DNA of 42,413 bases from Macrostomum lignano (lineage: Eukaryota). The notes under the pieces are model-generated. The model had not been told where the DNA came from. It worked only from the letters and a program-made list of their open reading frames with translations, and made no database searches. The stretch lies in contig NIVC01003553.1 in the NCBI GenBank assembly GCA_002269645.1, positions 1 through 42,413 of the forward strand, written 5' to 3'. Shown in pieces: positions 1,912 through 41,380 of the stretch (within the stretch, counting starts at the first letter, position 1; each line of letters starts with the position of its first letter). Both the position numbers and the translations under genes were made by a program.

Positions 1912-1968
1912 TTTAGAGAGTAGAGTTTTTTTAATTAAAGCCTTTTAACGCCAAGACAAAAAAAATTA

Positions 1969-3010
1969 TGGAAGCGTCATGTAAACAATCATACAAGCGT
2001 CATGTAAACAATCATAGAAGCGTCATGTAAACAATCATAGAAGCGTCATGTAAAAATCATAGAAGCGTCATGTAAAAATCATAGAAGCGTAATGTAAACA
2101 ATCATAGAAGCGTCATGTTAAAATCATAAAAGCGTCATGTAAACAATCATACAAGCGTCATGTAAACAATCATAGAAGCGTCATGTAAAAAAATCATAGA
2201 AGCGTCATGTTAAAATCATAAAAGCGTCATAAAAAATCATAGAAGCGTCATGCAAGCAATCATAGAAGCGTAATGTAAACAATCATAGAAGCGTCATGTT
2301 AAAATCATACAAGCGTCATGTAAACAATCATACAATCGTCATGTAAACAATCATAGAAGCGTCATGTAAAAAAATCATAGAAGCGTCATGTTAAAATCAT
2401 AGAAGCGTCATGTAAACAATCATAGAAGCGTCATGTAAAAATCATAGAAGCGTCATGTAAAAATCATAGAAGCGTCATGTAAACAATCATAAAAGCGTCA
2501 TGTAAACAATCATAGAAGCGTCATGTATACAATCATAGAAGCGTCATGTAAACAATCATAGAAGCGTCATGTATACAATCATAGAAGCGTCATGTAAACA
2601 ATCATAGAAGCGTCATGTAAAAATCATAGAAGCGTCATGTAAAAATCATAGAAGCGTCATGTAAAAATCATAAAAGCGTCATGTAAAAATCATAGAAGCG
2701 TCATGTAAAAAATCATAGAAGCGTCATGTAAAAATCATAAAAGCGTCATGTAAAAATCATAGAAGCGTCATGTAAACAATCATACAAGCGTCATGTAAAC
2801 AATCATAGAAGCGTCATGTAAAAATCATACAAGCGTCATGTAAACAAGCATAGAAGCGTCATGAAAAAATTATAGAAGCCTCATATAAAAACTAATGAAA
2901 GTGTGTCATTTAAAAAATTAAGAAGCATCATGGAAGAATAAAAGAAGCGTAACGTAAAAATCAAAAGAAGCGTCATGTCAGACATGAAAGAAATGTCATA
3001 TAAAAATTAA
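1969..3010. repeat. 23-bp satellite GAAGCGTCATGTAAACAATCATA (regular to about 2870, then degenerate)
   Basis: About 40 direct copies read from the sequence. Confidence 0.97.
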
Positions 3011-3039: not shown

Positions 3040-3990
3040 GAGAATTACTGAGACGTCAAGGCTCACAGAGAATAACTGAGATTACAGGGGGGTTTCTGAG
3101 ATGTTAAAGCAAAAGTCAGAAGCTACTTCAAAGTACATGTACTTTACTTAAGTTTTTTATTGCATTCTTTGTTGGCTTGCCACGGTGGGGGGGCGCTAAT
3201 AGAAGAAGAGTCATATAAAAATAAAAGGAGCACTATGTATACATAAAATAAAAGTCATGTCAAAGTTAAAAGATTCATTTGGGAATTGCTACGATGTCAA
3301 AGCTTGGAGGGAATCGTTATAGTGCTGTGATTCTTAAAGAAGGAATCACTTAAATGCCAAGGCTTAGGGAAGAAGAATTGCTGTGATTTCAAGGCTTTAG
3401 GTTGGGTGAAAGTTAGGTTTACGTCAGGTTTGGGTTGAGGGTTAGATTTTAGCGCGTTTCAAGGTTAACAGGGGATTTTTTAGATTTCAAGGTTTATGGG
3501 GGGCATCGCTGACATGTCAAGGCTTACGAGGGGAATCTATCTATCTATCTATAGCTGAGATGTCAAGGCTCACGGGGGAATAAATGAGATGTCAAGGCTA
3601 ATGTCAGAAGCTACATGTAGTTTATTGGAAAAAAGTTATTACATTATTTGTCGGCTCCTCACGGGAGGATCGCTGATAGAAAAAGCGTAATGTAAAAAAA
3701 AAAAGAAGCTTCATGTCAAAGTTAAGAGATTCATTTGGGAATCCCTACGATGTCGAGGCTTGCAGGGAATCGCTATAATGCTGTAGTAGTGCTATAGACT
3801 CTTAGAGAGAATTACTGAAATTTCAATGCTTTAGGGTTAGGGTTAGGGTTAGGGTTAGGGTTAGAAAATAGACAGATTTTTTAAGATTTCAAGGCTTGTG
3901 GGAGCATTGCTGAGATGTCAAGGGGGGAGTTGATATGTTAAGGCTTGTGGGGGGGGATTGCTGACATGTCAAGGCTTACAAGGGTACTGG
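3040..3990. repeat. Diverged tandem duplication (period about 490 bp) with internal GCTGAGATGTCAAGGCT subrepeats
   Basis: Paired segments, e.g. GTCATGTCAAAGTTAAAAGATTCATTTGGGAATTGCTACGATGTC (about 3254) versus TTCATGTCAAAGTTAAGAGATTCATTTGGGAATCCCTACGATGTC (about 3710), and GTCAGAAGCTAC in both copies. Confidence 0.75.
3831..3864 (+). repeat. Interstitial telomeric tract (TTAGGG)5 TTAG
   Basis: Perfect TTAGGG hexamers read directly. Confidence 0.92.
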
Positions 3991-4966: not shown

Positions 4967-5029
4967 TTAGTAGTACAAAAAAGATATTTTTATTAAAACA
5001 CCTTAAAAAACACAACAAAACTGCTAAAC

Positions 5030-8000
5030 ATCAAAGAAGCGCAATGTCAAACATAGAAGAGCCAACATATCGAACATAAAAGAGTTAACATATCAAACAT
5101 AGAAGAGCCACCATGTCAAACATAAAAGAGCCACCAGGTCAAACATAAAAGAGCCACCATGTCAAACATAAAAGAGCCACCATTTCGAACATTAAAGAGC
5201 CACCATTTCGAACATTAAAGAGCCACCATTTTGAACATTAAAGAGCCACCATGTCAAACAATTAGAAGCCACCATGTCAAACATTAAAGAGCCACCATGT
5301 CGAACATAAAAGAGCCACCATTTCGAACATTAAAGAGCCACCATGTCGAACATTAAAGAGCCACCATGTCGAACATTTAAGAGCCACCATGTCAAACATT
5401 AAAGAGCCACTTTGTCGAACATTAAAGAGCCACCATGTCAAACATAAAAGAGCCAACATGTCAAACATTTAGGAGCCACCATGTCAAACATTTAGGAGCC
5501 ACCATGTCAAACATATATGTGACTTTATGTCAAACATTAAAGAGTTACCATTTCAAACCTTAAAAGCCACTATGTCGAACATTAAAGAGCCACCATGTCT
5601 AACATAAAAGAGCTATACCATGAAGAACATGAAAGAGCCACCATGTCGAACATAAAAGAGCCACCATGTAGAATATTAAAGAGCCACCATGTCAAACATT
5701 TAAGAGCCACCATGTCAAACATTTAAGAGCCACCATGTCGAACATAAAAGAGCTACCATGTCGAACATTAAAGAGCCACCATGTCAAACATAAAAGAGCC
5801 ACCATTTCGAACATTAAAGAGCCACCATTTCGAACATTAAAGAGCCACCATTTTGAACATTAAAGAGCCACCATGTCAAACAATTAGAAGCCACTATGTC
5901 AAACATTAAAGAGCCACCATGTCGAACATAAAAGAGCCACCATTTCGAACATTAAAGAGCCACCATGTCGAACATTAAAGAGCCACCATGTCGAACATTT
6001 AAGAGCCACCATGTCAAACATTAAAGAGCCACTTTGTCGAACATTAAAGAGCCACCATGTCAAACATAAAAGAGCCAACATGTCAAACATTTAGGAGCCA
6101 CCATGTCAAACATTTAGGAGCCACCATGTCAAACATATATGTGACTTTATGTCAAACATTAAAGAGTTACCATTTCAAACCTTAAAAAGCCACTATGTCG
6201 AACATTAAAGAGCCACCATGTCTAACATAAAAGAGCTATACCATGAAGAACATGAAAGAGCCACCATGTCGAACATAAAAGAGCCACCATGTAGAATATT
6301 AAAGAGCCACCATGTCAAACATTTAAGAGCCACCATGTCAAACATTTAAGAGCCACCATGTCGAACATAAAAGAGCTACCATGTCGAACATTAAAGAGCC
6401 ACCATGTCAAACATTTAAGAGCCACCATGTCAAACATATATGTGACTTTATGTCAAACATTAAAGAGCAACCATGTCGAACATTAAAGTGCCACCATGTG
6501 TAACATAAAAGAGCTATATCATGAAGAACATCAAAGAGCCACCATGTTAAAAATTAAAGAGCCACCATGTGAAACATTTAAGAGCCACCATGTCAAACCT
6601 AAAAGAGCCACCATGTTGAACATAAAAGAGCCACCATTTCAAACATTGAAGAGCCACTATTTCGAAAATTAAAGAGCCAGCATATCAAACAATAGCCACC
6701 ATGTCAAACATTAAAGAGCCACTTTGTCGAACATTAAAGAGCCACCATGTCAAACATAAAAGAGCCAACATGTCAGACATTAAAAAGCCACCGTATCAAA
6801 CATAAAAGAGTTACCATGTAGAACAAAAAAGAGCCACCATGTCGAACAAAAAAGAGCCACCATGAAGAACATCAAAGAGCCACCATGTCGAACATTAAAG
6901 AGCCACCATGAAGAACATTAAAGAGCCACCATGTCAAACATAAAAGAGCCACCATGTTAAACATAGAAGAGCCACCATGTCAGATGTTAAAAAGAGCCAC
7001 CATGTCTAACATATATGTGACTTTATTTCAAACATTAAGGAGCCACCATTTCGAACATTAAAGAGCAACCATGTCGAACATTAAAGAGCCACCATGTCGA
7101 ACATTAAAGAGCCACCATGTCGAACATTAAAGAGCCACCATGAAGAACATTAAAGAGCCACCATGTCAAACATAAAAGAGCCACCATGTTAAACATAGAA
7201 GAGCCACCATGTCAGATGTTAAAAAGAGCCACCATGTCTAACATATATGTGACTTTATTTCAAACATTAAGGAGCCACCATTTCGAACATTAAAGAGCAA
7301 CCATGTCGAACATTAAAGAGCCACCATGTCGAACATTAAAGAGCCACCATGTCGAACATTAAAGAGCCACCATGAAGAACATTAAAGAGCCACCATGTCA
7401 AACATAAAAGAGCCACCATGTTAAACATAGAAGAGCCACCATGTCAGATGTTAAAAAGAGCCACCATGTCGAACATATATGTGACTTTATGTCAAACATA
7501 TATGTGACTTTATGTCAAACATAAATGTGACTTTATGTCAAACATATATGTGACTTTATGTCAAACATATATGTGACTTTATGTCAAACATATATGTGAC
7601 TTTATGTCAAACATATATGTGACTTTATGTCAAACATAAATGTGACTTTATGTCAAACATATATGTGACTTTATGTCAAACATATATGTGACTTTATGTC
7701 TAACATATATGTGATTTTATTTCAAACATTAAGGAGCCACCATTTCGAACATTAAAGAGCAACCATGTCGAACATTAAAGAGCCACCATGTCGAACATTA
7801 AAGAGCCACCATGTCTGACATTAAAGAGCCACCATGTCGAACATTAAAGGGCCACCATGTGGAACATTAAAGAGCCACCATGTCAAACCTAAAAGAGCCA
7901 CCATGTCAAACATTAAAGAGCCACCATGTCAAACATAAATCTGGCATGATGTCAAACATTAAAGTGCCACCATATCGAACATTAAAGAGCCACCATGTCT

Positions 8001-8640
8001 AACAATAAAGAGCCACCATGTCGAACATTAAAGGGCCACCATGTGGAACATTAAAGAGCCACCATGTCAAACCTAAAAGAGCCATCATGTCGAACATTAA
8101 AGAGCCACCATGTCAAACATAAATCTGGCATGATGTCAAACATTAAAGTGCCACCATATCGAACATTAAAGAGCCACCATGTCTAACAGTAAAGAGCCAC
8201 CATGTCGAACATTAAAGAACCACCATGTCGAACATTAAAGAGCCACCATGTCAAACCTAAAAGAGCCACCATGTCGAACATTAAAGAGCCACCATGTCAA
8301 ACATAAATCTGGCATGATGTCAAACATTAAAGTGCCACCATATCGAACATTAAAGAGCCACCATGTCTAACAGTAAAGAGCCACCATGTCGAACATTAAA
8401 GAACCACCATGTCGAACATTAAAGAGCCACCATGTCGAACATAAAAGAGCCACCATTTCGAACATTAAAGAGCCACCATGTCGAACATAAATCTGGCATG
8501 ATGTCAAACATTAAAGTGCCACCATATCGAACATTAAAGAGCCACCATGTCTAACAGTAAAGAGCCACCATGTCGAACATTAAAGAACCACCATGTCGAA
8601 CATTAAAGAGCCACCATGTCTAACAGTAAAAAGCCACCAT
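5030..8640. repeat. 23-bp satellite AAAGAGCCACCATGTCGAACATT with higher-order duplications and a sub-array of AACATATATGTGACTTTATGTCA (about 7470-7720)
   Basis: About 155 copies. Identical spurious ORFs at 5277-5468 and 5899-6090 show a 622-bp higher-order duplication. Confidence 0.97.
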
Positions 8641-9196
8641 GTCGCCTGCTATCTGGGGGTGCTTGCTATCTGGGAGAGCCTGCTATCTGGGGGTGCTTGC
8701 TATCTGGTGGTGCTTGCTATCTGGGGGTGCTTGCTATCTGGAGGTGCTTGCTATCTGGGGGTGCCTGCTATCTGGGGGTGCCTGCTATCTGGGGGTGCTA
8801 GCTATCTGGTGGTGCTTGCTATCTGGGGGTGCTTGCTATCTGGGGTGTTTGCTATCTGGGGGTGCTTGCTATCTGGTGTGCTTGCTATCTGGGGGTGCCT
8901 GCTATCTGGGGGTTCCTGCTATCTGGGGTCGCTTGCTATCTGGGGTGCTTGCTATCTGGGGGATGCTTGCTATCTGGGGGGTGCCTGCTATCTGGGGAGT
9001 GCTTGCTATATGGGGGGTGCCTGCTATCTGGGGGGTGCTTGCTATCTGGGGGTGCCTGCTATCTGGGGGGATGCTTGCTATCTGGGGGATGCTTGCTATT
9101 TGGGGGATGCTTGCTATGTGGGGGATGCTTGCTATCTAGGGGATGCTTGCAATCTGGGGGATGCTTGCTATCTTGGGATGCTTGCTGTCTTGGGAT
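8641..9196. repeat. G-rich about 17-bp array GCTTGCTATCTGGGGGT
   Basis: About 33 copies with G4-5 runs, ending in ATGCTTGCTGTCTTGGGA. Confidence 0.96.
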
Positions 9197-11447: not shown

Positions 11448-12599
11448 ATGAGCAGTCGGAAGTCGCAGTTGCGGCCCATTGAGGAGCCTGAAGTGGAGAT
11501 TGTATTTGACGACTTCGCCTACCCTGGCTTTGGCGCCGGCGGCGGCGGCGGCGGCGGGGGCCCCGGCTGCAACGACGAAGAGTTCAACAGGCTGCTGGAC
11601 AACTTGAAGCACCGGTTCGCCCCCAGGGCCGGAGCTGCCACCTACCTGTCTTTGTCCGGCGGGCCGCAGGTCCGCACCGGCCGCGGCTCTCGCATGCTGG
11701 TCAAGGAGGAGCCGCTCGATGTTGCGACACCCACCGCGGTGTCGGCGGCTGCGAGCTCTGGCGGTGGCCGACGTATTGTCGGGGCGAACTCGGCGGCTGC
11801 TGCTGCTGCGGCGGCGGCGGCTGCGGCCGAAGCGGCGGAGGCGGCGGCTGCGGTTGACTCGGTGGACGACGCCGCCGTGGACTCGCTGTTCACCCTGGCC
11901 GGCCAGGAGGTTGTGGTCACCTCGGCCGCCACAGACGACGAACTCGACGAGCTGGAAGAGATCGTTGCCGACGAGGACGACGACGGCGCCGGCAGCGGAG
12001 CGGCTCTGATGCGCGCCGGCCGCGGCAGCAACGCGCCAACGCTGAACTCGACCATCTCCCGGCTGGCCAACTACCTGTCCGACAAGCACGGCCAGGACTT
12101 CGGCCCCGTCAGCGCTGCCATACAGAAGACCGCCGCCGCTGCCGCTGCCGCCTCTACCAGTCGGCCTTCGCAGCAGCAGCAGCAGCAGCAGACGGTCATG
12201 GCTGCGTCAGCGTCCCCAGCTGCTTCAACCCTGCTGATGAGCCGCCAGCAGCAGCAACAGCAGCAGCAGTTCCAGCAGCAGCAACGCCAGCTGCTTCAGC
12301 AGCACCAGCAGCACCAGCACCAGCGAGCATCGGTGGCCGTGGTTCGCGCTCGAATGCTCAGCATGGACCGGGAGAAGCGCTTCTCCTGCTACGTCTGCCA
12401 GCGCCGGTTCCACCTGTTTGCCCACCTGCGCAATCACCTGGAGACGCACACGGGAGAAAAGCCGTACGTGTGCAAGCAGTGCGGCAAAAGCTTCGCCACG
12501 CCGACCAGCTTGAAGCGCCACCTGCCGGTGCACCACTCGGACAAGAAGCACCAGTGCGCAGTGTGCGCCAAGACCTACGCCAACCAGGGCTATCTGAAG
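11448..12599 (+). CDS. C2H2 zinc-finger transcription factor, exon 1 of 2 (join 11448-12599,14055-14387; 494 aa; six fingers)
   Basis: Low-complexity Gly/Ala/Gln N-terminus, two full C-x2-C-x12-H-x3-H fingers with a TGEKP linker, and the first half of finger 3. Donor AAG|GTGCGT at 12599/12600, phase 0. Confidence 0.92.
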
Positions 12600-12713
12600 G
12601 TGCGTGTCGAGCTCAATTACACGCTAATGACATGCATTGTGAAGGGGTTATCAACTTGGGCACCTGAGTGGACTGCTGAAGTAAAGATCCCGTCTACTCC
12701 CATCTAATTAACT

Positions 12714-13932
12714 CCCCCTAGATTCGCCCTCCCCTAGATTCGCCCTCCCTAGATTCGCCCTCCCCTAGAATCGCCCTCCCCTAGATTCACCCTCCCCTAG
12801 ATTCGCCCTCCCCTAGATTCGCCCTCCCCTAGATTCGCTCTCTCCTAGAGTCGCCCTCCCCTAGATTCGCCCTCCCCTAGATTCGCCCTCCCCTAGATTC
12901 GCCCTCCCCTAGATTCGCTCTCTCCTAGATTCGCCCTCCCTAGATTCGCCCTTCCTAGATTCGCCCTCCCCTAGATTCGCCCTCCCTAGATTCGCCCTTC
13001 CCTAGATTCGCCCTCCCTAGAGTCGCCCTCCCCTAAAGTTGCCCTCCCCTAGATTCGCCCTCCCTAGATTCGCCCTCCCTAGAGTCGCCCTCCCCTAAAG
13101 TTGCCCTCCCCTAGATTCGCCCTCCCTAGAATCACCCTCTCCTAGATTCGCCCTCCCTAGAATCACCCTCTCCTAGATTCGCCCTCCCTAGATTCGCCCT
13201 CCCTAGATTCGCCCTCCCTAAAGTTGCCCTCCCCTAGATTCGCCCTCCCTAGATTCGCCCTCCCTAGAGTCGCCCTCCCCTAAAGTTGCCCTCCCCTAGA
13301 TTCGCCCTCCCTAGAATCACCCTCTCCTAGATTCGCCCTCCCTAGAATCACCCTCTCCTAGATTCGCCCTCCCTAGATTCGCCCTCCCTAGAGTCGCCCT
13401 CCCCTAAAGTTGCCCTCCCCTAGATTCGCCCTCCCTAGATTCGCCCTCCCTAGAGTCGCCCTCCCCTAAAGTTGCCCTCCCCTAGATTCGCCCTCCCTAG
13501 ATTCACCCTCTCCTAGATTCGCCCTCCCTAGATTCGCCATCCATAGAGTCGCCCTCCCTAGAGTTACTCTCCCCTAGATTCGCCCTCCCCTAGAGTCGCC
13601 CTCCCTAGATTCGCTCTCTCCTAGATTCGCCCTCCCTAGATTCGCCCTCCCTAGATTTGCCCTCCCTAGAGTCGCCCTCCCTAGAGTTACTCTCCCCTAG
13701 ATTCGCCCTCCCCTAGAGTCGCCCTCCCTAGATTCGCTCTCTCCTAGATTCGCCCTCCCTAGATTCGCCCTCCCTAGATTTGCCCTCCCTAGAGTCGCCC
13801 TCTCTAGAGTTACTCTCCCCTAGATTCGCCCTCCCCTAGAGTCGCCCTCCCTAGATTCGCTCTCTCCTAGAGTTGCCCTTCCTAGAATCACAATCCCCTA
13901 GATTCGCCCTCCCTAGAGTCGCCCTCTCCTGT
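12714..13932. repeat. Intronic 18/19-bp C-rich minisatellite CCTAGATTCGCCCTCC(C)
   Basis: About 65 copies filling most of the zinc-finger intron 12600-14054. Confidence 0.97.
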
Positions 13933-14054
13933 ATTGAGAATACTACGGTAGTCATGATTTAAGGCTGTTTTTATTTTTATATTCGTTCATATCCGTTTCG
14001 AGTCCTGCGACTAACCAACAAGTAGGCTGATTTGGGTCCACCGCGTGCCCGCAG

Positions 14055-15577: not shown

Positions 15578-16264
15578 CTGGCGACGGTATTAGCAGCGGA
15601 ATCACCGGCGATAATCACTGCTAATCACTTCGAGTATTCAGGGGGGAGAGGGGATTAAAGAGGCCAAGCAACTCACCGAGTGGACGGCAGCAGGCAAAGG
15701 CTACTGAATCATATATAACTGTATTTCTTTGTCTGTTTGCAACACACCTGGGACACCCGGGCGCCCTGCTCCCGTCCCGGTTGTCAACAAGCAGGAAGAA
15801 GCGAACAGGCAGGCCCGAGCGTCACTCCGCCCGCTCTGCCTCTTATTTAGGAGGGCACAAAAGGCAGACGGAGGGGGGGTGCAGGGTGGGGAGGCTGGAG
15901 AGCAGCTTGTTAAAGGAAGGAAGGCTTTGCAGCAACTGACTGAGGCTTCACGCATCGAACTGAATGAGCACATAATAATCACGGGGGCGATTGGCTGCTG
16001 GGCTCGGGGAAGCTTCATCACTGATCCTCAGTATTTCCTTCTCCCACCTTTCTTTCTCTCTCCCCCCCCCCTGACTGAGCGGGGGCTGCAGGTGCTACAG
16101 GTGAGCATCGGTGCTGCTAGGGGAGCTTCACGATACCGCGAAGGGGAATTAAAGCAGAGCTGCGCAGCTTTGTCACCCGCGTGCATGCAGGCTGCCGACA
16201 CAGCTCGAAATTGACATCCTGCGATTTCTAGGGCAAGCAGCGGGGCCTCTCCTTGCTGTTTTAT

Positions 16265-16940: not shown

Positions 16941-17264
16941 TTATCAAATCCTGTCCTCTAACCATCTCTTACATTCCCATTCCCAGTCAGCCTTCAGCCT
17001 CCTAATTCTCCTTTCTTCCCCTCAATCCAACAGCTTGCAGATCCCAATCCCAGTTGTGTTAATTTCAATTCACAGAATCCACCCTCAGTAGGATCTCTCC
17101 TGATTGTACCAATCTAATTTTCCATTCAAAAATATAAAAAACCGCCTCAGTGTCTGCGTTAGAAGAATTAAATTTTTATTAGAGTCTGTTTTTTGAAGCA
17201 TTTATTAATTGAATGCACATCGATCTGATGCGCGAAGGGCGCCTCTGCTGGGTTCTGATAGACG

Positions 17265-18055
17265 CTGGGATCAGGGACAATATGAGACACTGGGATCAGG
17301 GACAATATGAGACACTGAATAGAGATACTGGGATCAGGGACAATATAAGATACTTGGATCAGGGACAATATAAGATACTTGGATCAGGGACAATATAAGA
17401 TACTTGGATCAGGGACAATATAAGATACTTGGATCAGGGACAATATAAGATCTGGGATCAGGGACAATAGACACTGGATAGAGACACTGGGATCAAGGGA
17501 CAATATAAGATACTGGGATCAGGGGCAATATGAGACACTGGGATCAGGGACAATATGAGACACTGGGATCAGGGGCAATATGAGACACTGGGATCAGGGA
17601 CAATATAAGATACTGGGATCAGGGGCAATATGAGACACTGGGATCAGGGACAATATGAGATACTGGGATCAGGGACAATATGAGATCCTGGGATCAGGGA
17701 CAATATGAGACGCTGGGATCAGGGACAATATGAGATACTGGGATCAGGGACAATATAAGATTTGGGATTAGGGACAATATAAGATACTGGGATCAGGGAC
17801 AATATAATATTTGGGATCAGGGACAATATGAGATACTGGGATCAGGGACAATATGAGACACTGGGATCAGGGACAATATGAGACACTGGGATCAGGGACA
17901 ATATGAGACACTGGGATCAGGGACAATATGAGACACTGGGATCAGGGACAATATGAGACACTGGGATCAGGGACAATATGAGATACTGGGATCAGGGACA
18001 ATATAAGATACTGGGATCAGGGACAATATGAGACACTGGATAGAGACACTGGGAT
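17265..18055. repeat. 25-bp minisatellite CTGGGATCAGGGACAATATGAGACA
   Basis: About 31 copies. Confidence 0.96.
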
Positions 18056-20347: not shown

Positions 20348-20369
20348 GACAGACTGACAGACAGACAGA

Positions 20370-20421
<52 letters not shown>

Positions 20422-20480
20422 CTAAGACAGACACTAAGATAGACAGACAGACAGACAGGCAGGCAGACAGACAGACACTA

Positions 20481-20513
<33 letters not shown>

Positions 20514-20559
20514 GGCAGGCAGACAGACAGACAGAAGACACTAAGACAGACAGACACTA

Positions 20560-20612
<53 letters not shown>

Positions 20613-20690
20613 GGCAGGCAGGCAGACAGACAGACAGACAGAAGACACTAAGACAGACAGACACTAAGACAGACAGACAGACAGACAGGC
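20348..20690. repeat. (AGAC)n microsatellite with AGACACTA and AGGC interruptions
   Basis: Read directly from the sequence. Confidence 0.96.
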
Positions 20691-21627: not shown

Positions 21628-22200
21628 GATTGGGATTACGGACACTGAATTGGGATTAGAGATAATGAATTGGGATTAGGGATAATTAATTGGGGTTGGG
21701 GATAATGAATTGGGATTAGGGATAATGAATTGGGATTAGGGACACTGAATTGGGATTAGGGATAATGAATTGGGATTAGGGATAATGAATTGGGATTAGG
21801 GACACTGAATTGGGATTAGGGATAATGAATTGGGATTGGGATAAAGGACACTGAATTGGGATTAGGGATAATGAATTGGGATTGGGATAAAGGACACTGA
21901 ATTGGGATTAGGGATAATGAATTGGGATTAGGGATAATGAATTGACATTAGGGATAATGAATTGGGATTAGGGACACTGAATTGGGATTAGGGACACTGA
22001 ATAGGGATTAGGGATAATGAATTGGGATTAGGGATAATGAATTAGGATTAGGGATTATGAATTGGGATTAGGGACACTGAATTGGGATTAGGGATAATGA
22101 ATTGGGATTAGGGACACTGAATTGGGATTAAGGACATTGAATTGGGATTAGGGATAATGAATTGGGATTAGGGAAATTTAATTGGGATTAGAGACACTGA
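21628..22200. repeat. 20-bp telomere-like minisatellite GAATTGGGATTAGGGATAAT
   Basis: About 28 copies, most containing TTAGGG. Variant unit GAATTGGGATTAGGGACACT. Confidence 0.96.
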
Positions 22201-22819: not shown

Positions 22820-22915
22820 TCAGCAGGTGGACCTGATCACATGATACTGACGCAGCGTGATTCGCAGAGAGCCCAGCTCCCTGTCAATACTGTCCAATCG
22901 TTTCTCCAGCCGTTC
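22820..22915 (-). CDS. MPHOSPH9: MPHOSPH9-like protein, exon 8 of 8 (ERLEKRLDSIDRELGSLRITLRQYHVIRSTC*)
   Basis: Acceptor TTTTTCGCAG|, phase 0. Closely resembles the remembered MPHOSPH9 C-terminus LEDRLERINRELGSVRMTLKKFHVLRT. Confidence 0.88.
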   Translation of the reverse strand, partial: ERLEKRLDSIDRELGSLRITLRQYHVIRSTC

Positions 22916-23044
22916 CTGCGAAAAATTCAGTGCTTAGGATTAGCATTTGCTACTGTGAGTAATATATGCGAGTAGCTAGCGAAACAAGCAAACTAAGAGG
23001 CAGGTAATGACACTCTGGAAACAACGCATGATTCTAACCTGACC

Positions 23045-23515
23045 CAGGAATCTACGCCTGACACCAAGCTATCTGACACCCCGGAATCTATGCCTGACAC
23101 CAAGCTATCTGACACCCCGGAATCTATGCCTGACACCAAGCTATCTGACACCCCGGAATCTATGCCTGACACCAAGCTATCTGACACCCCGGAATCTATG
23201 CTTGACACCAAGCTACCTGCACCCCGGAATCTATGCCTGACACCAAGCTATCTGACACCCCGGAATCTATGCCTGACACTAAGCTATCTGAATCTGACAC
23301 CCGGAATCTATGCCTGACGCCAAGCTATCTGACACCCCGGAATCTATGCCTGACACCAAGCTATCTGACACCCCGGAATCTATGCCTGACACCAAGCTAT
23401 CTGACACCCCGGAATCTATGCCTGACACCAAGCTATCTGACACCCCGGAATCTATGCCTGACACCAAGCTATCTGACACCCCGGAATCTACGCCTGACAC
23501 CAAGCTGACACTCTG
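23045..23515. repeat. Intronic 36-bp minisatellite CTATCTGACACCCCGGAATCTATGCCTGACACCAAG
   Basis: About 13 copies. The unit is itself two related CTGACACC halves. Confidence 0.96.
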
Positions 23516-23863
23516 GAATTTACGCATTATGCCAGGCTGACACTGCATTCCTACATGATTATAATAATTGATACTAAAAGCGACTATAGCTTAAATACAT
23601 AGTCTAAATACTCTTAAAGCAACTAACTACTGGTTAAAGTAGGCAGATTTCTTTTTTGCAGTACTGCCTCTAGTTTTAACAGTCTTTAGCTGATTCTGAT
23701 TGCTTCGATGTTTCTTGCTGTTGCTGCTTTTGCTGCTACGGCGGCAGCGCTGCGAACCCGTTGAGTCCTCAGACACCTTGTGAATAGACGCATTTTTTGT
23801 ATAGAAACAGCCTTTACTCAGCAGTTAAAACGGCCCATTTCAGAACAGCAGCCACCTACTCAC

Positions 23864-24236
23864 CTTGTCCTCGCGACTCTGCCGGCCGTACTTGGCCGAC
23901 CCGACGCTCGGCACGTGATTGAGCGCCGTCTCTACCCGTCGCTTTTCCAACTGCAGCTGATCGTAGCGCTGCTCCAGGGTTCGAATCTCAGCCAGCTGGG
24001 CGTCCCTGTCCCAGGCTGGGGCGCCGCCAGCGCCACCGCCGCCACCGCCCATACTGTCTCTCGCCTGCGGCAGGCTGTCAATCAGCTGACGCCGTTCCAG
24101 ATCGGCCAGAGACTGGCGAAGCGCCTCCGTTGGACTGCGGCGGCCGTCGCTGCCCAGAACGGAGTCCAGACCGGCGGAGAAGCGGGACTGCTCAGGAGCC
24201 TGCTCTTCGCTCCAGTCACCGGATAGGGAGTGAGAC
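23864..24236 (-). CDS. MPHOSPH9: MPHOSPH9-like protein, exon 7
   Basis: Acceptor CTCCCAG| (phase 2), donor AAG|GTGAGT (phase 0). EQRYDQLQLEKRRVETALNHVP resembles MPHOSPH9 ERFFDELTKEKDQIEAALSRMP. Confidence 0.88.
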
Positions 24237-24254
24237 CTGGGAGCAGCGGGGTTA

Positions 24255-26820
24255 GAGAGGGATCTCAGATAGTCAGTGGATTAAGAGGGGATCTCAAATC
24301 GGTCAGTGGATTAGGAGGGGATCTCATCTGTCAGTGGACTGAGAGGGATTTCAGATCAGTCAGTGGATTAAGAGGGGATCTTAGATCTGTTAGTGGATTA
24401 AGAGGGGATCTCAGATCGTCAGTGGATTAAGAGGGGATCTCAGATCGTCAGTGGATTAAGAGGGGATCTCTCAGATCTGTTAGTGGATTAAGAGGGGATC
24501 TCAGATCTGTTAGTGGATTAAGAGGGGATCTCAGATCTGTCAGTGGATTAAGAGGGGATCTCAGATCTGTCAGTGGATTAAGAGGGGATCTCAGATCTGT
24601 TAGTGGATTAAGAGGGGATCTCAGATCTGTTAGTGGATTAAGAGGGGATCTCAGATCTGTCAGTGGACTGAGAGGGGATCTGAGATCAGTCAGTAGCTTA
24701 AGAGGGGATCTCAGATCTGTTAGTGGATTAAGAGGGGATCTCAGATCTGTTAGTGGATTAAGAGGGGATCTCAGATCTGTCAGTGGATTAAGAGGGGATC
24801 TCAGATCTGTCAGTGGATTAAGAGGGGATCTCAGATCTGTCAGTGGATTAAGAGGGGATCTCAGATCTGTCAGTAGCTTAAGAGGGGATCTCAGATCTGT
24901 CAGTGGATTAAGAGGGGATCTCAGATCTGTTAGTGGATTAAGAGGGGATCTCAGATCTGTTAGTGGATTAAGAGGGGATCTCAGATCTGTCAGTGGACTG
25001 AGAGGGGATATGAGATCAGTCAGTAGCTTAAGAGGGGATCTCAGATCTGTCAGTGGATTAGGAGGGGATCTCAGATCTGTCAGTGGATTAAGAGGGGATC
25101 TCAGATCTGTCAGTGGATTAAGAGGGGATCTCAGATCTGTTAGTGGATTAAGAGGGGATCTTAGATCTGTTAGTGGATTAAGAGGGGATCTCAGATCTGT
25201 CAGTGGACTGAGAGGGGATATGAGATCAGTCAGTAGCTTAAGAGGGGATCTCAGATCTGTCAGTGGATTAGGAGGGGATCTCAGATCTGTCAGTAGCTTA
25301 AGAGGGGATCTCAGATCTGTCAGTGGATTAAGAGGGGATCTCAGATCTGTCAGTGGATTAAGAGGGGATCTCAGATCTGTCAGTGGATTAAGAGGGGATC
25401 TCAGATCTGTCAGTGGATTAAGAGGGGATCTCAGATCTGTCAGTGGATTAAGAGGGGATCTCAGATCTGTCAGTGGATTAAGAGGGGATCTCAGATCTGT
25501 TAGTGGATTAAGAGGGGATTTCAGATCTGTCAGTGGATTAAGAGGGGATCTCAGATCTGTTAGTGGATTAAGAGGGGATCTCAGATCTGTCAGTGGACTG
25601 AGAGGGGATATGAGATCAGTCAGTAGCTTAAGAGGGGATCTCAGATCTGTCAGTGGATTAGGAGGGGATCTCAGATCTGTCAGTAGCTTAAGAGGGGATC
25701 TCAGATCTGTCAGTGGATTAAGAGGGGATCTCAGATCTGTCAGTGGATTAAGAGGGGATCTCAGATCTGTCAGTGGATTAAGAGGGGATTTCAGATCTGT
25801 CAGTGGATTAAGAGGGGATCTCAGATCTGTTAGTGGATTAAGAGGGGATTTCAGATCTGTCAGTGGATTAAGAGGGGATCTCAGATCTGTTAGTGGATTA
25901 AGAGGGGATCTCAGATCTGTCAGTGGACTGAGAGGGGATCTCAGATCTGTCAGTGGATTAAGAGGGGATCTCAGATCTGTTAGTGGATTAAGAGGGGATC
26001 TCAGATCTGTCAGTGGACTGAGAGGGGATCTCAGATCTGTCAGTGGATTAAGAGGGGATCTCAGATCTGTCAGTGGATTAAGAGGGGATCTCAGATCTGT
26101 CAGTGGATTAAGAGGGGATCTCAGATCTGTCAGTGGATTAAGAGGGGATCTCAGATCTGTCAGTGGATTAAGAGGGGATCTCAGATCTGTCAGTGGATTA
26201 AGAGGGGATCTCAGATCTGTTAGTGGATTAAGAGGGGATTTCAGATCTGTTAGTGGATTAAGAGGGGATCTCAGATCTGTCAGTGGACTGAGAGGGGATA
26301 TGAGATCAGTCAGTAGCTTAAGAGGGGATCTCAGATCTGTCAGTGGATTAGGAGGGGATCTCAGATCTGTCAGTAGCTTAAGAGGGGATCTCAGATCTGT
26401 CAGTGGATTAAGAGGGGATCTCAGATCTGTCAGAGGACTGAGAGGGGATCTCAGATCGGTCAGTAGACTGGGGGGGGATCTCAGATCTGTTAGTGGATTA
26501 AGAGGGGATCTCAGATCTGTCAGTGGATTAAGAGGGGATCTCAGATCTGTCAGTGGATTAAGAGGGGATCTCAGATCTGTTAGTGGATTAAGAGGGGATC
26601 TCAGATCTGTCAGTGGATTAAGAGGGGATCTCAGATCTGTTAGTGGATTAAGAGGGGATCTCAGATCTGTCAGTGGATTAGGAGGGGATCCCAGATTAGT
26701 CAGTAGCTTAAGAGGGGATCTCAGATCTGTCAGTGGATTAAGAGGGGATCTCAGATCTGTCAGAGGACTGAGAGGGGATCTCAGATCGGTCAGTAGACTG
26801 GGGGGGATCTCAGATCTGTC
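24255..26820. repeat. Intronic 30-bp minisatellite GATCTCAGATCTGTCAGTGGATTAAGAGGG
   Basis: About 85 copies, with variant blocks (GACTGAGAGGGGATATGAGATCAGTCAGTAGCTTA) recurring at 24991, 25201, 25591 and 26281. Confidence 0.98.
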
Positions 26821-26850
26821 GGTGTACAGTGAAGGAGTCAAGCGACTCAC

Positions 26851-27368
26851 CCGACGCCCCGCTCCCTGTTCCGCAGAAACATTCTCTCCGACTCTGCCGC
26901 GGCCAGCCGGCGCCTCAGCTTGTCAGTCTCGGCGCGGGCCTCCGTCAGCCTGGCGCGCAGCCGTTCAGACTCGGCGCGCTCCCTGGCCAGCGCCGTTGCG
27001 TGCTCGCGCCGCACCGAGGCGACGCCTTCGGCGGCTTCTTTTAACGCCGCGTGCGCAGCCTCCAGCTGGTGGCGCAGCTCCGCAGCGCGCGACGCTTCCG
27101 CCCGCGCCTCGCGCAGCTCGCGCAGGAGATGGCGCCGCTCCTCGTCAAACGCAGCGGCGGCGTTGGCGCCATCCTGACGCTCACCGGCGCCCAATCTTGA
27201 CGACGCCGACGGATGGTTGCGGCGCCTCCGGCTGACGGCTGCGACCTCAGCGTCGAAGTTGTCGACGGCTTCGGCCGGGCTGAGCTGGTGCAGCAGCGAC
27301 AGCGGCGGGGGTTCGCTGCCGCCGCGCACGCTTGGAGGCGACGCGGCTGAAGCCACGGCCGCGGAAAC
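26851..27368 (-). CDS. MPHOSPH9: MPHOSPH9-like protein, exon 6 (coiled coil)
   Basis: Acceptor CACCGCAG| (phase 0), donor GG|GTGAGT (phase 2, matching exon 7). E/R/A/L-rich heptads. Confidence 0.85.
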
Positions 27369-27446
27369 CTGCGGTGCGGGGAGTTTAGCAGAGGTACAAA
27401 AAATAATAATCCTACACTAAAATGCTACTTGTAGTAGCAAACGCAC

Positions 27447-27562
27447 CGGTGACGCAGACGAGTGGCCATTGTACCGCCTATTGGCGCCGCGCCCGACGCG
27501 GCTTTTGAAGTCTCCGTGCTCTGCCAGATCGTCGAAGGAATGTTGATCGACTGCGTAATGAC
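27447..27562 (-). CDS. MPHOSPH9: MPHOSPH9-like protein, exon 5
   Basis: Acceptor CTTGCCAG| (phase 1), donor CCG|GTGCGT (phase 0). A 78-bp intron separates it from exon 6. Confidence 0.78.
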
Positions 27563-27629
27563 CTGGCAAGGTGGAATCGAACCAAGGCTCTCGAATAAGA
27601 TGGAGAAACAAGTTGATTAAAATTCAATA

Positions 27630-27880
27630 AGAATCCCAAATCCCCAACCATGGCTCACAAATCCCAGATTAAATAAAAATCCCAAATCCACCCCGAATCC
27701 CAGATTCAATAAAAATCCCAAATCCACCCCAAATCCCAGATTCAATACGACTCTCAAATCCCTAACTCCCCGATTCAATACGACTCCAAAATCCCCAAAA
27801 TCTCAGATTCAATACGACTCTCAAATCCCAAAATCCCTGATTCGATACGACTCAAAAATCCCCAAAATCCCAGATCCCTA
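27630..27880. repeat. Degenerate intronic array AATCCCAGATTCAATACGACTC / AAATCCC
   Basis: About 7 imperfect 30-35-bp units. Confidence 0.8.
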
Positions 27881-27919
27881 ACTGCCCGAACAGCACAGAT
27901 CCCCAGTGCAGATGCTCAC

Positions 27920-28438
27920 CGCCATTAGCAGCCGCAGCTTCTCCCCGCTCTGTGGGGCTGCAGCCCAGCAGGACGCTCTGGTTAAAATAGTCGCTGGTCT
28001 CCTGCTGGTATCGCCGAATGCGGTCGCTGACCCCGGCCAGACGCTCGTGAGTGCTGCGAACGAGGGGTCAATGCCCTCCTCATAGCCGTCAGAGTCCGGA
28101 GCGACCTGCGCAAATGGAGCAGGATCAGCCACCCGATGGCGGTACGGCGGCTGCCGCTGCTGCTGACGTGGCCGCGGCTGCGGGGGCGGCAGCGGCGGCT
28201 GCTGCTGCTGCTGCTCTTCAATGGAGGCGCGAGACAGCCGCTGGCGAACGTCATCTAACAGACGGAGCTCCTCGGAAGTCAGGGTCGACGGCAGAACTCG
28301 GTGCTGACCAACGGCGGAAGTGGAAGCGGCGCCTTGGCGGGAGGACAGCATCTCGGCTGGCAGGTAAGACCGGACACTGTTGTCCGGGCGCAGGTTCAGC
28401 GCCATGTGGATCGGGTTGTCCAGAGTCAGGCGGGACGG
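27920..28438 (-). CDS. MPHOSPH9: MPHOSPH9-like protein, exon 4, with an apparent 1-nt deletion at the G-run 28064-28067
   Basis: Acceptor TTTACCCGCAG| (phase 0), donor G|GTGAGC. One extra base gives ...EEGIDPLVRSTHERLAGVSDRIRRYQQETSDYF... and the phase 1 needed for exon 5. Confidence 0.72.
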
Positions 28439-28449
28439 CTGCGGGTAAA

Positions 28450-30320
28450 GCAGTAGGCCCTTTGGGTCAGAGTGGGTGTGCAGTAGGCTCTTTGGGTCAG
28501 AGTGGGTGTGCAGTAGGCCCTTTGGGTCAGAGTGGGTGTGCAGTAGGCCCTTTGGGTCAGAGTGGGTGTGCAGTAGGCCCTTTGTGTCAGAGTGGGTGTG
28601 CAGTAGGCCCTTTGGGTCAGAGTGGGTGTGCAGTAGGCCCTTTGGGTCAGAGTGGGTGTGCAGTAGGCTCTTTGGGTCAGAGTGGGTGTGCAGTAGGCCC
28701 TTTGTGTCAGAGTGGGTGTGCAGTAGGCCCTTTGGGTCAGAGTGGGTGTGCAGTAGGCCCTTTGGGTCAGAGTGGGTGTGCAGTAGGCCCTTTGGGTCAG
28801 AGTGGGTGTGCAGTAGGCCCTTTGGGTCAGAGTGGGTGTGCAGTAGGCCCTTTGGGTCAGAGTGGGTGTGCAGTAGGCCCTTTGGGTCAGAGTGGGTGTG
28901 CAGTAGGCCCTTTGGGTCAGAGTGGGTGTGCAGTAGGCCCTTTGGGTCAGAGTGGGTGTGCAGTAGGCCCTTTGGGTCAGAGTGGGTGTGCAGTAGGCCC
29001 TATGGGTCAGAGTGGGTGTGCAGTAGGCCCTTTGTGTCAGAGTGGGTGTGCAGTAGGCCCTTTGGGTCAGAGTGGGTGTGCAGTAGGCCCTTTGGGTCAG
29101 AGTGGGTGTGCAGTAGGCTCTTTGGGTCAGAGTGGGTGTGCAGTAGGCCCTTTGGGTCAGAGTGGCTGTGCAGTAGGCTCTTTGGGTCAGAGTGGGTGTG
29201 CAGTAGGCCCTATGGGTCAGAGTGGGTGTGCAGTAGGCTCTTTGGGTCAGAGTGGGTGTGCAGTAGGCTCTTTGAGTCAGAGTGGGTGTGCAGTAGGCCC
29301 TTTGGGTCAGAGTGGGTGTGCAGTAGGCCCTTTGGGTCAGAGTGGGTGTGCAGTAGGCCCTTTGGGTCAGAGTGGGTGTGCAGTAGGCTCTTTGGGTCAG
29401 AGTGGGTGTGCAGTAGGCCCTTTGGGTCAGAGTGGGTGTGCAGTAGGCCCTTTGGGTCAGAGTGGGTGTGCAGTAGGCCCTATGGGTCAGAGTGGGTGTG
29501 CAGTAGGCTCTTTGGGTCAGAGTGGGTGTGCAGTAGGCCCTTTGGGTCAGAGTGGGTGTGCAGTAGGCCCTTTGGGTCAGAGTGGGTGTGCAGTAGGCCC
29601 TATGGGTCAGAGTGGGTGTGCAGTAGGCTCTTTGGGTCAGAATGGGTGTGCAGTAGGCCCTTTGGGTCAGAGTGGGTGTGCAGTAGGCCCTATGGGTCAG
29701 AGTGGGTGTGCAGTAGGCTCTTTGGGTCAGAGTGGGTGTGCAGTAGGCCCTTTGGGTCAGAGTGGGTGTGCAGTAGGCCCTTTGGGTCAGAGTGGGTGTG
29801 CAGTAGGCCCTTTGGGTCAGAGTGGGTGTGCAGTAGGCTCTTTGGGTCAGAGTGGGTGTGCAGTAGGCTCTTTGGGTCAGAGTGGGTGTGCAGTAGGCTC
29901 TTTGAGTCAGAATGGGTGTGCAGTAGGCTCTTTGGGTCAGAGTGGGTGTGCAGTAGGCTCTTTGGGTCAGAGTGGGTGTGCAGTAGGCCCTTTGGGTCAG
30001 AGTGGGTGTGCAGTAGGCCCTTTGGGTCAGAGTGGGTGTGCAGTAGGCCCTTTGGGTCAGAGTGGGTGTGCAGTAGGCCCTATGGGTCAGAGTGGGTGTG
30101 CAGTAGGCTCTTTGGGTCAGAGTGGGTGTGCAGTAGGCCCTTTGGGTCAGAGTGGGTGTGCAGTAGGCTCTTTGGGTCAGAGTGGGTGTGCAGTAGGCTC
30201 TTTGGGTCAGAGTGGGTGTGCAGTAGGCTCTTTGAGTCAGTGGGTGGCAGTAGGCTCTTTGGGTCAGAGTGGGTGTGCAGTAGGCTCTTTGGGTCAGAGT
30301 GGGTGTGCAGTAGGCTCTTG
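28450..30320. repeat. Intronic 30-bp minisatellite CAGTAGGCCCTTTGGGTCAGAGTGGGTGTG
   Basis: About 62 highly homogeneous copies. Confidence 0.98.
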
Positions 30321-30391
30321 GATTTGTATGGGCGTGCAGCAGACGTGTTGACGCGCAATGGGTAGTCAGTGCCGATCCCCAAACTTCTCAC

Positions 30392-30499
30392 CCTGTCTTC
30401 GCCAGCCGCGGAGTCTCCCGCAGGCAGCCCCTGCTGCCGTCGGGCCAGCCGCTGGTCCAGCTGGCGCTTCTCCTCGGCCAGCTCGCGACGAAGATTTGA
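30392..30499 (-). CDS. MPHOSPH9: MPHOSPH9-like protein, exon 3 (SNLRRELAEEKRQLDQRLARR...)
   Basis: Acceptor CCCTGACCGCAG|, donor AGG|GTGAGA. 108 bp, phase 0/0. Confidence 0.82.
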
Positions 30500-30600
30500 C
30501 TGCGGTCAGGGAGGGGGCAATGCCTCAAGTACATAAGTGCGACACCCGGGAAAGTGATGGAAAACCAGATAATTCACGCCTCCCTCATCAGTGGACGCAC

Positions 30601-30684
30601 CTGCAGCTGATCTAGTTCGCGTCTGTGATTGTCCAACTGGCGATCGGCCTCATCACGGCTGTGTGACTGGCTGTCACGCTGGTC
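30601..30684 (-). CDS. MPHOSPH9: MPHOSPH9-like protein, exon 2 (DQRDSQSHSRDEADRQLDNHRRELDQLQ)
   Basis: Acceptor ATACCCGCAG|, donor CAG|GTGCGT. 84 bp, phase 0/0; a 101-bp intron follows. Confidence 0.8.
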
Positions 30685-30697
30685 CTGCGGGTATCAG

Positions 30698-31105
30698 GAT
30701 CATGCAGATATATTCTAGAGTGTCAGGATTGGGTCATGCAGATAGATTCCCGGCTGTCAGGTTTGGGTCATGCAGATCGATTCTAGAGTGTCAGGATTGG
30801 GTCATGCAGATAGATTCCCGGGTGTCAGGTTTGGGTCATGCAGATCGATTCTAGAGTGTCAGGATTGGGTCTTGCAGATAGATTACTGGGTGTCAGGATT
30901 GGGTCATGCAGATCGATTCCAGGGTGTCAGGATTGGGTCATGCAGATCGATTCCAGGGTGTCAGGTTTGGGTCATGCAGATAGATTCTAGGGTGTCAGGT
31001 TTGGGTCATGCAGGTAGATTTCAGGGTGTCAGGTTTGGGTCATGCAGGTAGATTATAGGGTGTCAGGTTTAGGTCATGCATATGTTCCAGGGTGTTAGAT
31101 TCGGG
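30698..31105. repeat. Intronic about 34-bp minisatellite GGGTCATGCAGATAGATTCTAGGGTGTCAGGTTT
   Basis: About 12 copies. Confidence 0.94.
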
Positions 31106-31150
31106 TCATGCACAGTCCATCAAATAGCCATAAGCCAAAAGCCAACTCAC

Positions 31151-31594
31151 TCTATCAGACGAGTCAGTCTGCTGCCGAAGACTCTCTGACAATTGCTGCA
31201 ACAGAGCAGCTCCATTCTCGTCTTCATCATCCTCTTGATCTCCATCTTCGTTGCCGTGGTCATCCTCCTGCTCGGCTTGATGAGGCTCCTCATCACAAAC
31301 TCCCCGGTTCACTTCAGCATCTTCATCTGCTTGCTGAGCAGCATCGGCTCCATTCTGAGGAGGAGGCTGGGACTCCTCAAGATGGTCTTCTGCATCATCC
31401 TCTACATCAGAGGCGATAGGGGAAGGTGCTTCAACTACTGGCATTGGCGGAGGCACTTGGCCAGTTTGGCCTTCATTTGCTGCCTCATCTGGCGCAGCAG
31501 CCTCCTCTGAGCTTGGGGCAGCAACTTCTGTTTCTGCATCAACCAAATCTGAATTACTGTTGGCTGCCTCATCCTCCATAATGGGATCTTGCAT
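31151..31594 (-). CDS. MPHOSPH9: MPHOSPH9-like protein, exon 1 (acidic, disordered N-terminus); true start uncertain (ATG 31594 or 31579)
   Basis: Open D/E-rich frame and donor AGA|GTGAGT (phase 0). Linked to the downstream exons by phase only. Confidence 0.7.
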
Positions 31595-36222: not shown

Positions 36223-36275
36223 CTGAATTGGTGGGGCATGGGTTGGCTGGCCTCCGTACTCAGATTTTTACTGCC

Positions 36276-40470: not shown

Positions 40471-41380
40471 TATACAACTTTTATGTAATAAACTTTATAA
40501 TTAGCTATATTGTTGGCATTAATTTTTATTGTTTACAGTGTCCTAAATCAATATATGAACAATTTGTTTTTTTTAAATAAATTTAACTAGCCTTGATCAC
40601 AGATACTAGAATAACTAGATAGGCCATTCAGCACATTTGCATGCAGGCTACTTTCAGCTTAGTAGTAAGTTAAATAGAAGCATTTTTATTTATTTTTAAA
40701 GCCAAGGCTTATTATTTATTGGCTCTTATCCCCAGCTTAAACCTTCCAACTGCACCCCTCCACACTACTCTCTACCTTTCCATCCAATTTCATTGCCTTT
40801 CTTGGAATTCTATTCTAAAGCTGCCATGTAAAATATATAAGCAACACTTTATTGAAGCCTAAGCCTAGTATAAGTATACACTCAGCTCTATATATATTGC
40901 CTATATACTCTACATATATAATCGATATATACTGTAGAGCCTAAAGCCACTAACTAAAAGATGTAATCTAAAACACAGGCCTGTTTTCCCTGTTTTCACC
41001 ACATTATCCATGAAGATGACAGTAAAGATCTCGATCTGCCTAATCTTTTACTTATTTCCTCTCTTCTCATTAAAAACCGAAAATATAGTAAAAATTATTA
41101 AATAAAATTACAAAGTTGAGACAGCATCAATAATTATTTATACAGTTCAAAACGATTAATCTAATGTCAATGAATCACAATAAATATAAGTAGAAGAAGT
41201 ATATAAATATAATAAATGATGTATACAACAAAATTAAAACGTAAGTGTGTAATTAAAGTTGGAATTTAAAAAATCAAAAGCATATTTTATGTAAAAGTTT
41301 CTTAAGGGTAATTTTAGCCATAGTTTGTTAACGTCAAACTTGAAGATACAAAAGTAGATATATTTAGTTATAACTATATT

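Follow-up and report, generated by a model that had tools for sequence, protein, structure and literature searches.

The contig NIVC01003553.1 of genome assembly GCA_002269645.1 of the free-living flatworm Macrostomum lignano, a stretch of 42,413 nucleotides (nt) that was analysed over its whole length and is called the window here, carries a minus-strand gene of eight exons (22820-31594) whose introns consist largely of tandem repeats. All seven introns begin with GT and end with AG, and five of the seven contain arrays of 30-36-base units, which have lengthened short introns by up to 30-fold. The arrays make up 5537 of the 6517 nt of intron DNA in this gene (85%). They have the properties of ordinary minisatellites, and the evidence reviewed below argues that most of them probably arose in place, by tandem amplification of a piece of a short intron.

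The gene model opens with an ATG at 31594 and an acidic N-terminus in exon 1 (31151-31594), continues through exon 2 (30601-30684), exon 3 (30392-30499), exon 4 (27920-28438), exon 5 (27447-27562), the coiled-coil-encoding exon 6 (26851-27368) and exon 7 (23864-24236), and closes in exon 8 (22820-22915) with a TGA stop at 22820-22822. Its splice junctions were checked against five independent M. lignano protein models (P0001-P0005). One of these, P0005 (UniRef A0A1I8IGS3), crosses the junctions of introns 1 to 3, and hence runs across exons 1 to 4, with 100% identity to residues 2-348 of the spliced model; P0002 is likewise 100% identical over exon 2 (30684-30601), and exon 3 is covered by the protein-model alignments as well. 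Exons 5, 6 and 7 are supported by tblastn searches with the M. lignano protein models, and the high-scoring segment pairs of P0001-P0004 begin or stop at most a few nt away from the borders that the model gives exons 2, 5, 7 and 8. The G+C content of the exons is 53-73%, and outside the GC-rich coding blocks it is 26-40%.

The sequence-only reading had called this gene MPHOSPH9-like, a label that can be kept for one part of the protein. The last ~75 residues (about 672-750) align at E values of 1e-9 to 1e-6 with the very C-terminal ends of MPHOSPH9-named proteins of amphioxus (Branchiostoma), fish (Albula, Aplochiton) and a snail (Biomphalaria), so that membership by sequence similarity holds for the C-terminal region, which ends in exon 8. 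High-scoring matches of the translated exons were with M. lignano proteins only, the protein upstream of the last ~75 residues had no detectable match outside M. lignano, and a Pfam scan of the spliced protein returned no domain. The MPHOSPH9 homologs end at the same point as exon 8, arguing that the TGA at 22820-22822 is the true stop. Models P0002-P0004 (UniProt) extend further: after the residues RQYH they join a donor CAT/GTGATC at 22841/22840 with an acceptor at 21529/21528 and read on into an open reading frame (ORF) ending at 20947. The eighth intron that they imply (22840-21529), which would hold a 20-nt array at 21629-22191, was rejected because the MPHOSPH9 homologs end exactly at the exon-8 stop, and for the same reason the extension is read as probably the product of two adjacent genes fused in the models, or of a polycistronic transcript. 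The 20-nt array itself sits between the exon-8 stop and the downstream ORF.

A 1-nt frameshift interrupts exon 4 at a run of C residues (28064-28067), where the window reads CCCC and both P0004 and P0005 read GIDPLVRSTHERLAG, implying CCCCC. The one-residue homopolymer change accounts for the frameshift, which would be either an assembly error or a real lesion of this copy; no convincing candidate was found for an internal intron that might repair it. Several UniProt models of the gene are frame-shifted or fused with the downstream ORF, and the arrays mark error-prone spots for gene models and assemblies of M. lignano.

Arrays were called with Tandem Repeats Finder (TRF), and intron borders were taken from the minus-strand gene model. 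Intron 1 (30685-31150, 466 nt) contains an array at 30700-31112 with 12.2 copies of a 34-nt unit (86% matches), made up of 413 nt and leaving a residue of 53 nt. The array of intron 3 (28439-30391, 1953 nt) lies at 28450-30319 and has 62.4 copies of a 30-nt unit (96% matches; 1870 nt of array, 83 nt of residue), and that of intron 6 (24237-26850, 2614 nt) lies at 24254-26824 and has 85.8 copies of a 30-nt unit (91% matches; 2571 nt of array, 43 nt of residue). Intron 4 (27563-27919, 357 nt) holds about 5 copies of a 33/36-nt unit at 27658-27875 (81-85% matches; 218 nt of array, 139 nt of residue), and intron 7 (22916-23863, 948 nt) holds 12.8 copies of a 36-nt unit at 23042-23506 (94% matches; 465 nt of array, 483 nt of residue). 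Introns 2 (30500-30600) and 5 (27369-27446), of 101 and 78 nt, are array-free. The earlier claim of one array in each of five introns and none in the other two is therefore borne out by TRF and the gene model, with intron lengths that agree with the earlier figures.

The arrays of introns 1, 3 and 6 occupy almost the entire intron, leaving 26-72 nt free on the donor side and 11-17 nt on the acceptor side (11 nt at the acceptor of intron 3; 26 nt at the donor and 17 nt at the acceptor of intron 6). The distances to donor and acceptor are 44 and 95 nt in intron 4 and 357 and 126 nt in intron 7, where the array lies in mid-intron. The sense-strand units are TCTGCATGACCCAATCCTGACACCCTGGAATCTA in intron 1, ACACCCACTCTGACCCAAAGGGCCTACTGC in intron 3 and ACTGACAGATCTGAGATCCCCTCTTAATCC in intron 6 (main variant ACTAAC), and the intron 4 array is G/T-rich and telomere-like, with units of ~33 nt and decayed copies on both flanks. 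These arrays show the head-to-tail arrangement of units of about 10-100 bp that defines minisatellites (periods of 30-36 nt, 5-86 copies, 81-96% matches), and also the interspersed variant units and decayed edge copies that are typical of the class, as seen in variant maps and in the array flanks. Five of ten flanks resemble the unit of their own array (P <= 0.02) and do not resemble those of the other arrays. Chance is excluded as the source of the arrays because they are long and adjacent copies match at 81-96% by TRF.

Several properties of the arrays point to an origin within the introns that now contain them. When one unit is added back to the residue, introns 1, 3 and 6 come to 87, 113 and 73 nt, which matches the range of the array-free introns, both in this gene (78 and 101 nt) and in a paralog described below (90 and 104 nt). 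The residues alone (53, 83 and 43 nt) are mostly below every array-free intron seen. The resemblance of flanks to their own units indicates that the arrays decay into the surrounding intron, and on the 3' side this is seen in intron 1 (P=0.02) and intron 4 (P<0.004). Intron 1 terminates in the sequence TCTGCATGA-TCCTGATACCCGCAG, a partial unit, so that its acceptor lies in the last array copy. The variant map of intron 6 contains multi-unit blocks that are themselves repeated (CDCEA four times and GHC twice), a signature of out-of-register exchange.

The arrays that abut acceptors, those of introns 1, 3 and 6, also share a sequence character. Their sense strands are C-rich, with one CTGAC or CTAAC per unit, and are poor in the dinucleotide GT: the counts of GT versus AC are 1 and 44 in intron 1, 0 and 310 in intron 3 (no GT across the 1870 nt of the sense strand) and 12 and 170 in intron 6. 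Since only 11-17 nt separate array and acceptor, the branch points of these three introns must lie in the last unit, arguing that the amplified piece took in the branch-point region.

A transposable element could in principle have brought an array into an intron, and the termini of such an element were looked for as inverted repeats or target-site duplications. In introns 1, 3 and 6 the flanks, at 11-72 nt, are too short to accommodate them. No terminal inverted repeats were found around the intron 7 array, and the direct repeats beside it are decayed units; a transposon-borne array in intron 7 was rejected for want of flanking inverted repeats.

Direct evidence for changes in intron length came from an unlinked locus of the Mlig_3_7 assembly. 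The paralog P0040 (BOX15_Mlig006072g1) led to three separately assembled contigs of GCA_002269645.1, designated L005, L006 and L007, in which the same intron design recurs. The paralog has introns of 90, 104, 195, 302, 461 and 766 nt; arrays of 22-nt and 53-nt units occupy the 302-nt and the 461-nt intron, where the residues are 103 and 72 nt, respectively. Between the paralog and the window gene, introns in corresponding positions show no homology. In a neighbouring caspase-like gene, whose intron borders are the sole splice solution yielding the annotated 313 residues, an intron of 645 nt consists of 41 nt, a 589-nt array of CACAATCCCCTGACC and 15 nt. This array again carries CTGAC on the sense strand, with one CTRAY per unit and 0 GT versus 73 AC. 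The gene upstream has an intron in which a 34-nt unit contains the acceptor itself: the units end in CCCAG/AC and the real site reads GCCGCAG/AC. This intron measures 458 nt in one contig (L005 5967-6424) and 700 nt in another (L007 5736-6435), a difference of ~7 units, and its first ~105 nt are identical in the two copies, which are 97-99% identical nearby. The copy numbers recorded at this locus are 9.9, about 16.5 and 17.6. Intron length therefore changes through minisatellite copy number, as shown directly by this pair of near-identical copies. In the same intron the real acceptor is preceded by 10 to 18 decoys.

Other arrays at the unlinked locus vary as well. Although L005 and L006 are 99.8% identical over 15 kb, three further arrays (with 17-nt, 12/36-nt and 60/117-nt units) differ in length between them, and a 29-nt indel borders the 22-nt array. 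Taken together, the 16 introns whose splice sites were mapped, a non-random sample, consist of array for ~75% of their DNA. One might ask whether arrays, or array lengths, of this kind are artefacts of long-read assembly, given that at least one probable homopolymer error is present in the window, in the exon 4 run at 28064-28067. This explanation is very improbable. The variant maps are structured rather than noisy, the same type of array recurs in three contigs that were assembled separately, the intervals concerned are also skipped by independent gene models, and the high tandem-repeat content of the M. lignano genome has been published (PMC5730564).

The sequence-only reading had described each intronic array as private to its intron, and this part of the proposal did not survive. 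The units of introns 1 and 7, ~7 kb apart, are homologous over their full length in inverted orientation (28/36 positions, z about 8). With <=3 mismatches allowed, a 19-mer common to both, CTGACACCCNGGAATCTAT, occurs 24 times, exclusively in these two arrays and on opposite strands, where 0.06 would be expected; a metagenome scan with the 19-mer gave four single chance matches in microbial contigs and none in arrays. Decayed edge copies of the intron 7 array (TTCCAGAGTGTCA) are nearer the intron 1 consensus than is the homogenised core of intron 7, judging from a comparison of the sequences by eye, which fits common descent. The intron 6 unit shares TCT[G/C]AGATCCCCTCT with an array at 16264 and a shorter core with one at 36275, and the intron 4 unit has a telomere-like TGGGAT..GGGAT core in common with arrays at 21629 and 17323. 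Among the 19 array units of the window, 29 pairs share 7-mers, versus 13.2 for real non-array segments (P<0.003).

An alternative is that the arrays are members of dispersed families of minisatellites or satellites. Mobile elements would have carried them, or array fragments would have been reinserted, and after landing in introns they would have expanded. The inverted pair in introns 1 and 7, the three loose families that join intronic arrays to arrays outside the host gene, the excess of shared 7-mers and a weak similarity of the intron 3 unit to arrays of the unlinked locus (z=4.5-5.1) can all be read in this way. Against such dispersal, introns 1, 3 and 6 have no space for element termini (26-72 nt on one side and 11-17 nt on the other), the intron 7 array is not bordered by inverted repeats, and the constant acceptor gap of 11-17 nt together with a branch-point motif on the sense strand is not expected of random insertion. 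Strong similarity between units is moreover found chiefly within a region: z exceeds 5 in 3.5% of the unit pairs within the window and in 6.1% of those within L005, versus 0.9% between loci and 0% in shuffled controls. BLAST searches of the window minisatellites against 23 kb of unlinked M. lignano DNA (L005-L007) gave no match, and the translated units left no trace in a search of 5.8 billion proteins, which is a weak negative. Dispersed families thus seem an unlikely source of the intronic arrays, and high-copy dispersed families are not indicated by the window and the 23 kb of unlinked DNA. Arrays may be born locally and sometimes seed new arrays within kilobases. CTGAC-type arrays of different loci have only a short core in common against a C-rich background, and for these an independent origin from branch-point regions would be a better explanation than common descent.

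A special link of the arrays to introns, also part of the original proposal, had to be given up. TRF assigns 18.2 kb of the window (43%) to arrays. In the interval 1-11.4 kb, where no convincing ORF or gene was detected, their share is about two thirds; the unlinked 23-kb locus is 22% tandem repeat. Because arrays also fill gene-free DNA, the intron pattern is one aspect of the non-coding DNA of this genome, which has been reported to consist of 15% simple and tandem repeats and to have a mean intron length of 1.1-1.4 kb (Wudarski et al. 2017, PMC5730564). Elsewhere in the window, a neighbouring plus-strand gene assigned to the C2H2 zinc-finger class by Pfam has a single modelled intron (12600-14054, 1455 nt) with a 16/31-nt array at 12716-13926. 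This intron bears out half of an earlier statement that a zinc-finger and a C3orf18-like gene each contain such an array; the C3orf18-like gene could not be identified. Tandem repeats enter exons here only as in-frame triplets, namely the coding tracts (CGG)n at 11791-11853 and (CAG)n at 12246-12329 in exon 1 of the zinc-finger gene, which encode poly-Ala/Gly and poly-Gln.

Outside recognised genes, the arrays at 1600-1767 and 8647-9194 have near-identical units of 18 and 17 nt, and those at 1960-3007 and 5026-8643 have loosely similar units of 23 nt each. The two pairs run A B ... B' A' on one strand, which hints at an old duplication or at a composite array block that was split. A pure interstitial (TTAGGG)5.7 tract lies at 3831-3864, and minisatellite units with TTAGGG-like or TGGGAT cores occur at 17260-18048, 21629-22191 and 27620-27890; such cores may be decayed telomere-like seeds. 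Microsatellites of the (GACA)n/(ACAG)n type are present at 20348-20688 in the window (86 copies) and at 19311-19795 in L005 (123 copies), each just outside a called or inferred coding region. The sole non-microsatellite DNA common to the window and the unlinked locus is a dispersed repeat at 40598-40830, probably a transposon fragment, with 79% identical copies in L005 (1772-1997) and L007 (878-1104).

Several observations suggest that the arrays might be kept for a role in RNA processing, as branch-point reservoirs, as splicing regulators or as partners in RNA pairing. The arrays that abut acceptors provide one sense CTRAY per unit. The inverted arrays of intron 1 (30700-31112) and intron 7 (23042-23506) bracket exons 2-7, and pieces of 140 nt from the two are predicted to form an RNA duplex of -136.9 kcal/mol, versus -63.7 +/- 5.9 kcal/mol for shuffles, so that their pairing could drive back-splicing of exons 2-7. 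Inverted pairs of Alu elements that flank exons in the same arrangement promote back-splicing. In addition, the intronic minisatellite CeRep25B of Caenorhabditis elegans is associated with complex alternative splicing (PMC4039745). Maintenance for such a role is nonetheless quite improbable as the explanation of the arrays, for similar arrays fill the gene-free DNA of the window, copy number varies freely between near-identical genomic copies, and homologous intron positions of the paralog hold unrelated arrays or none.

Origin in place, the reading favoured here, has to be set against a number of findings that fit it less well. The association of the branch-point motif with proximity to the acceptor is only suggestive, with sense CTRAY in 4/5 acceptor-close arrays versus 1/5 of the others (one-sided Fisher test, P~0.10). 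Avoidance of GT, or of decoy donors, on the sense strand of the arrays was considered as a rule and dropped: it holds for the four CTGAC-type arrays and fails for the 53-nt array of the paralog, which carries 7 copies of GTAAGT on that strand. The residues of intron 7 (483 nt) and of the zinc-finger intron (244 nt) imply that not every ancestral intron was ~80-100 nt long, and these two introns, like the 766-nt intron of the paralog, indicate that length has other causes in some introns. The comparison drew on the window and the unlinked locus, and neither showed the ancestral state with one unit in an array-free ortholog or homeolog of these introns. Not every unit is confined to one locus, as the relationships of introns 1 and 7, of intron 6 with 16264 and 36275 and of intron 4 with 21629 and 17323 make plain. 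Finally, CAGAT or its complement ATCTG occurs in 9 of the 19 unit consensuses (P=0.003); the null maximum, from real non-array DNA, is 5.4. This motif could be a shared core, like that of human minisatellites, or a trace of common descent. The longer CAGATAG(C) is present in four of the 19 units.

On balance, most of the arrays are best explained by in-place tandem amplification within a short intron, given the sizes of the residues, the decay of arrays into their flanks, the acceptor within a unit, the block duplications and the 458- versus 700-nt intron; what falls away from the original proposal is that the arrays be private and specific to introns. The arrays would accordingly be minisatellites of the variable number tandem repeat (VNTR) type that probably arose inside short introns of about 70-110 nt. 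Starting from the anatomy of the arrays, their relatedness and the length change between genomic copies at the unlinked locus, all of which were observed directly, we infer the following order of events and repair mechanism. A piece of the intron of 15-36 nt would be duplicated in tandem, and the array would then grow, and continue to change in length, by out-of-register exchange or repair, including the duplication of multi-unit blocks. Selection would spare only the splicing signals, that is, about 26-70 nt after the donor and the module from branch point to acceptor. If the duplicated piece was the 3'-terminal module, the array would come to abut the acceptor, and on the sense strand each unit would hold either a CTGAC that resembles a branch point or a decoy acceptor. 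DNA outside recognisable genes would be filled in the same way, and arrays would sometimes seed related arrays nearby, the intron 7 array being an inverted relative of the intron 1 array.

A more general proposition is put forward only tentatively: that in M. lignano the growth of in-place minisatellites, rather than transposon insertion, is the main determinant of intron length. A base intron of ~70-110 nt would be inflated repeatedly from its own interior, often from the branch-point/acceptor module, the spliceosome would routinely skip tens of decoys, and inverted sister arrays such as those of introns 1 and 7 could also pair in the pre-mRNA. If general, this would let introns, and the genome with them, grow without transposons, in a species that serves as a regeneration model and whose repeats have hampered genome assembly. 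It also raises the question of how the splicing machinery chooses the true acceptor when 10-86 near-identical decoys, of branch points or of acceptors, lie immediately upstream.

The feature is real and striking, but it is of a known kind, namely intronic minisatellites in a genome already reported to be rich in tandem repeats; a literature search found no paper on minisatellite-inflated introns in Macrostomum. Like classical minisatellites or VNTRs, the arrays have head-to-tail units (15-53 nt), interspersed variants, decayed edges and block duplications, and arrays of the same kind at the unlinked locus vary in copy number between near-identical copies. The window arrays differ from the classical examples in density, since they take up 43% of 42 kb and, within one gene, 85% of the intron DNA, and in reaching to within 11-17 nt of acceptors, with the branch point necessarily inside the array. 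The CeRep25B minisatellite of C. elegans, with units of about 24 nt, is likewise mostly intronic, but it is one family clustered on particular chromosomes (PMC4039745), whereas nearly every array here has its own unit, with loose regional relatives.

The nearest special case to have been described is the "mirage" of amphioxus, a tandem duplication of an intron-exon boundary (PMC3087553). The resemblance lies in the tandem copies of an intron end beside the real splice site, the decoy splice signals and the unstable length, and it is closest in the 34-nt array of L005, which repeats the acceptor AG, and in intron 1, whose last partial unit supplies the acceptor. A mirage unit combines exon sequence with a splice site, and here only the intron side is repeated: comparison of the units with the first or last 40 nt of their own flanking exons showed no similarity (P=0.21-0.95; P=0.48 for the start of exon 7 versus the intron 6 unit), and the window arrays were therefore not classed as mirages. 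Their units are purely intronic, and their copy numbers, up to 86, are far higher. Introns of Drosophila Y-linked genes contain simple satellites that are shared with heterochromatin. In one account of the Y-linked fertility genes (PMC6508621), intron length is governed mainly by tandem repeats and not by transposons, as is the case here; the introns described there are megabase-sized, unlike those of the Macrostomum gene, which are 0.4-2.6 kb long, are built of 30-36-nt units and lie in a gene-dense setting.

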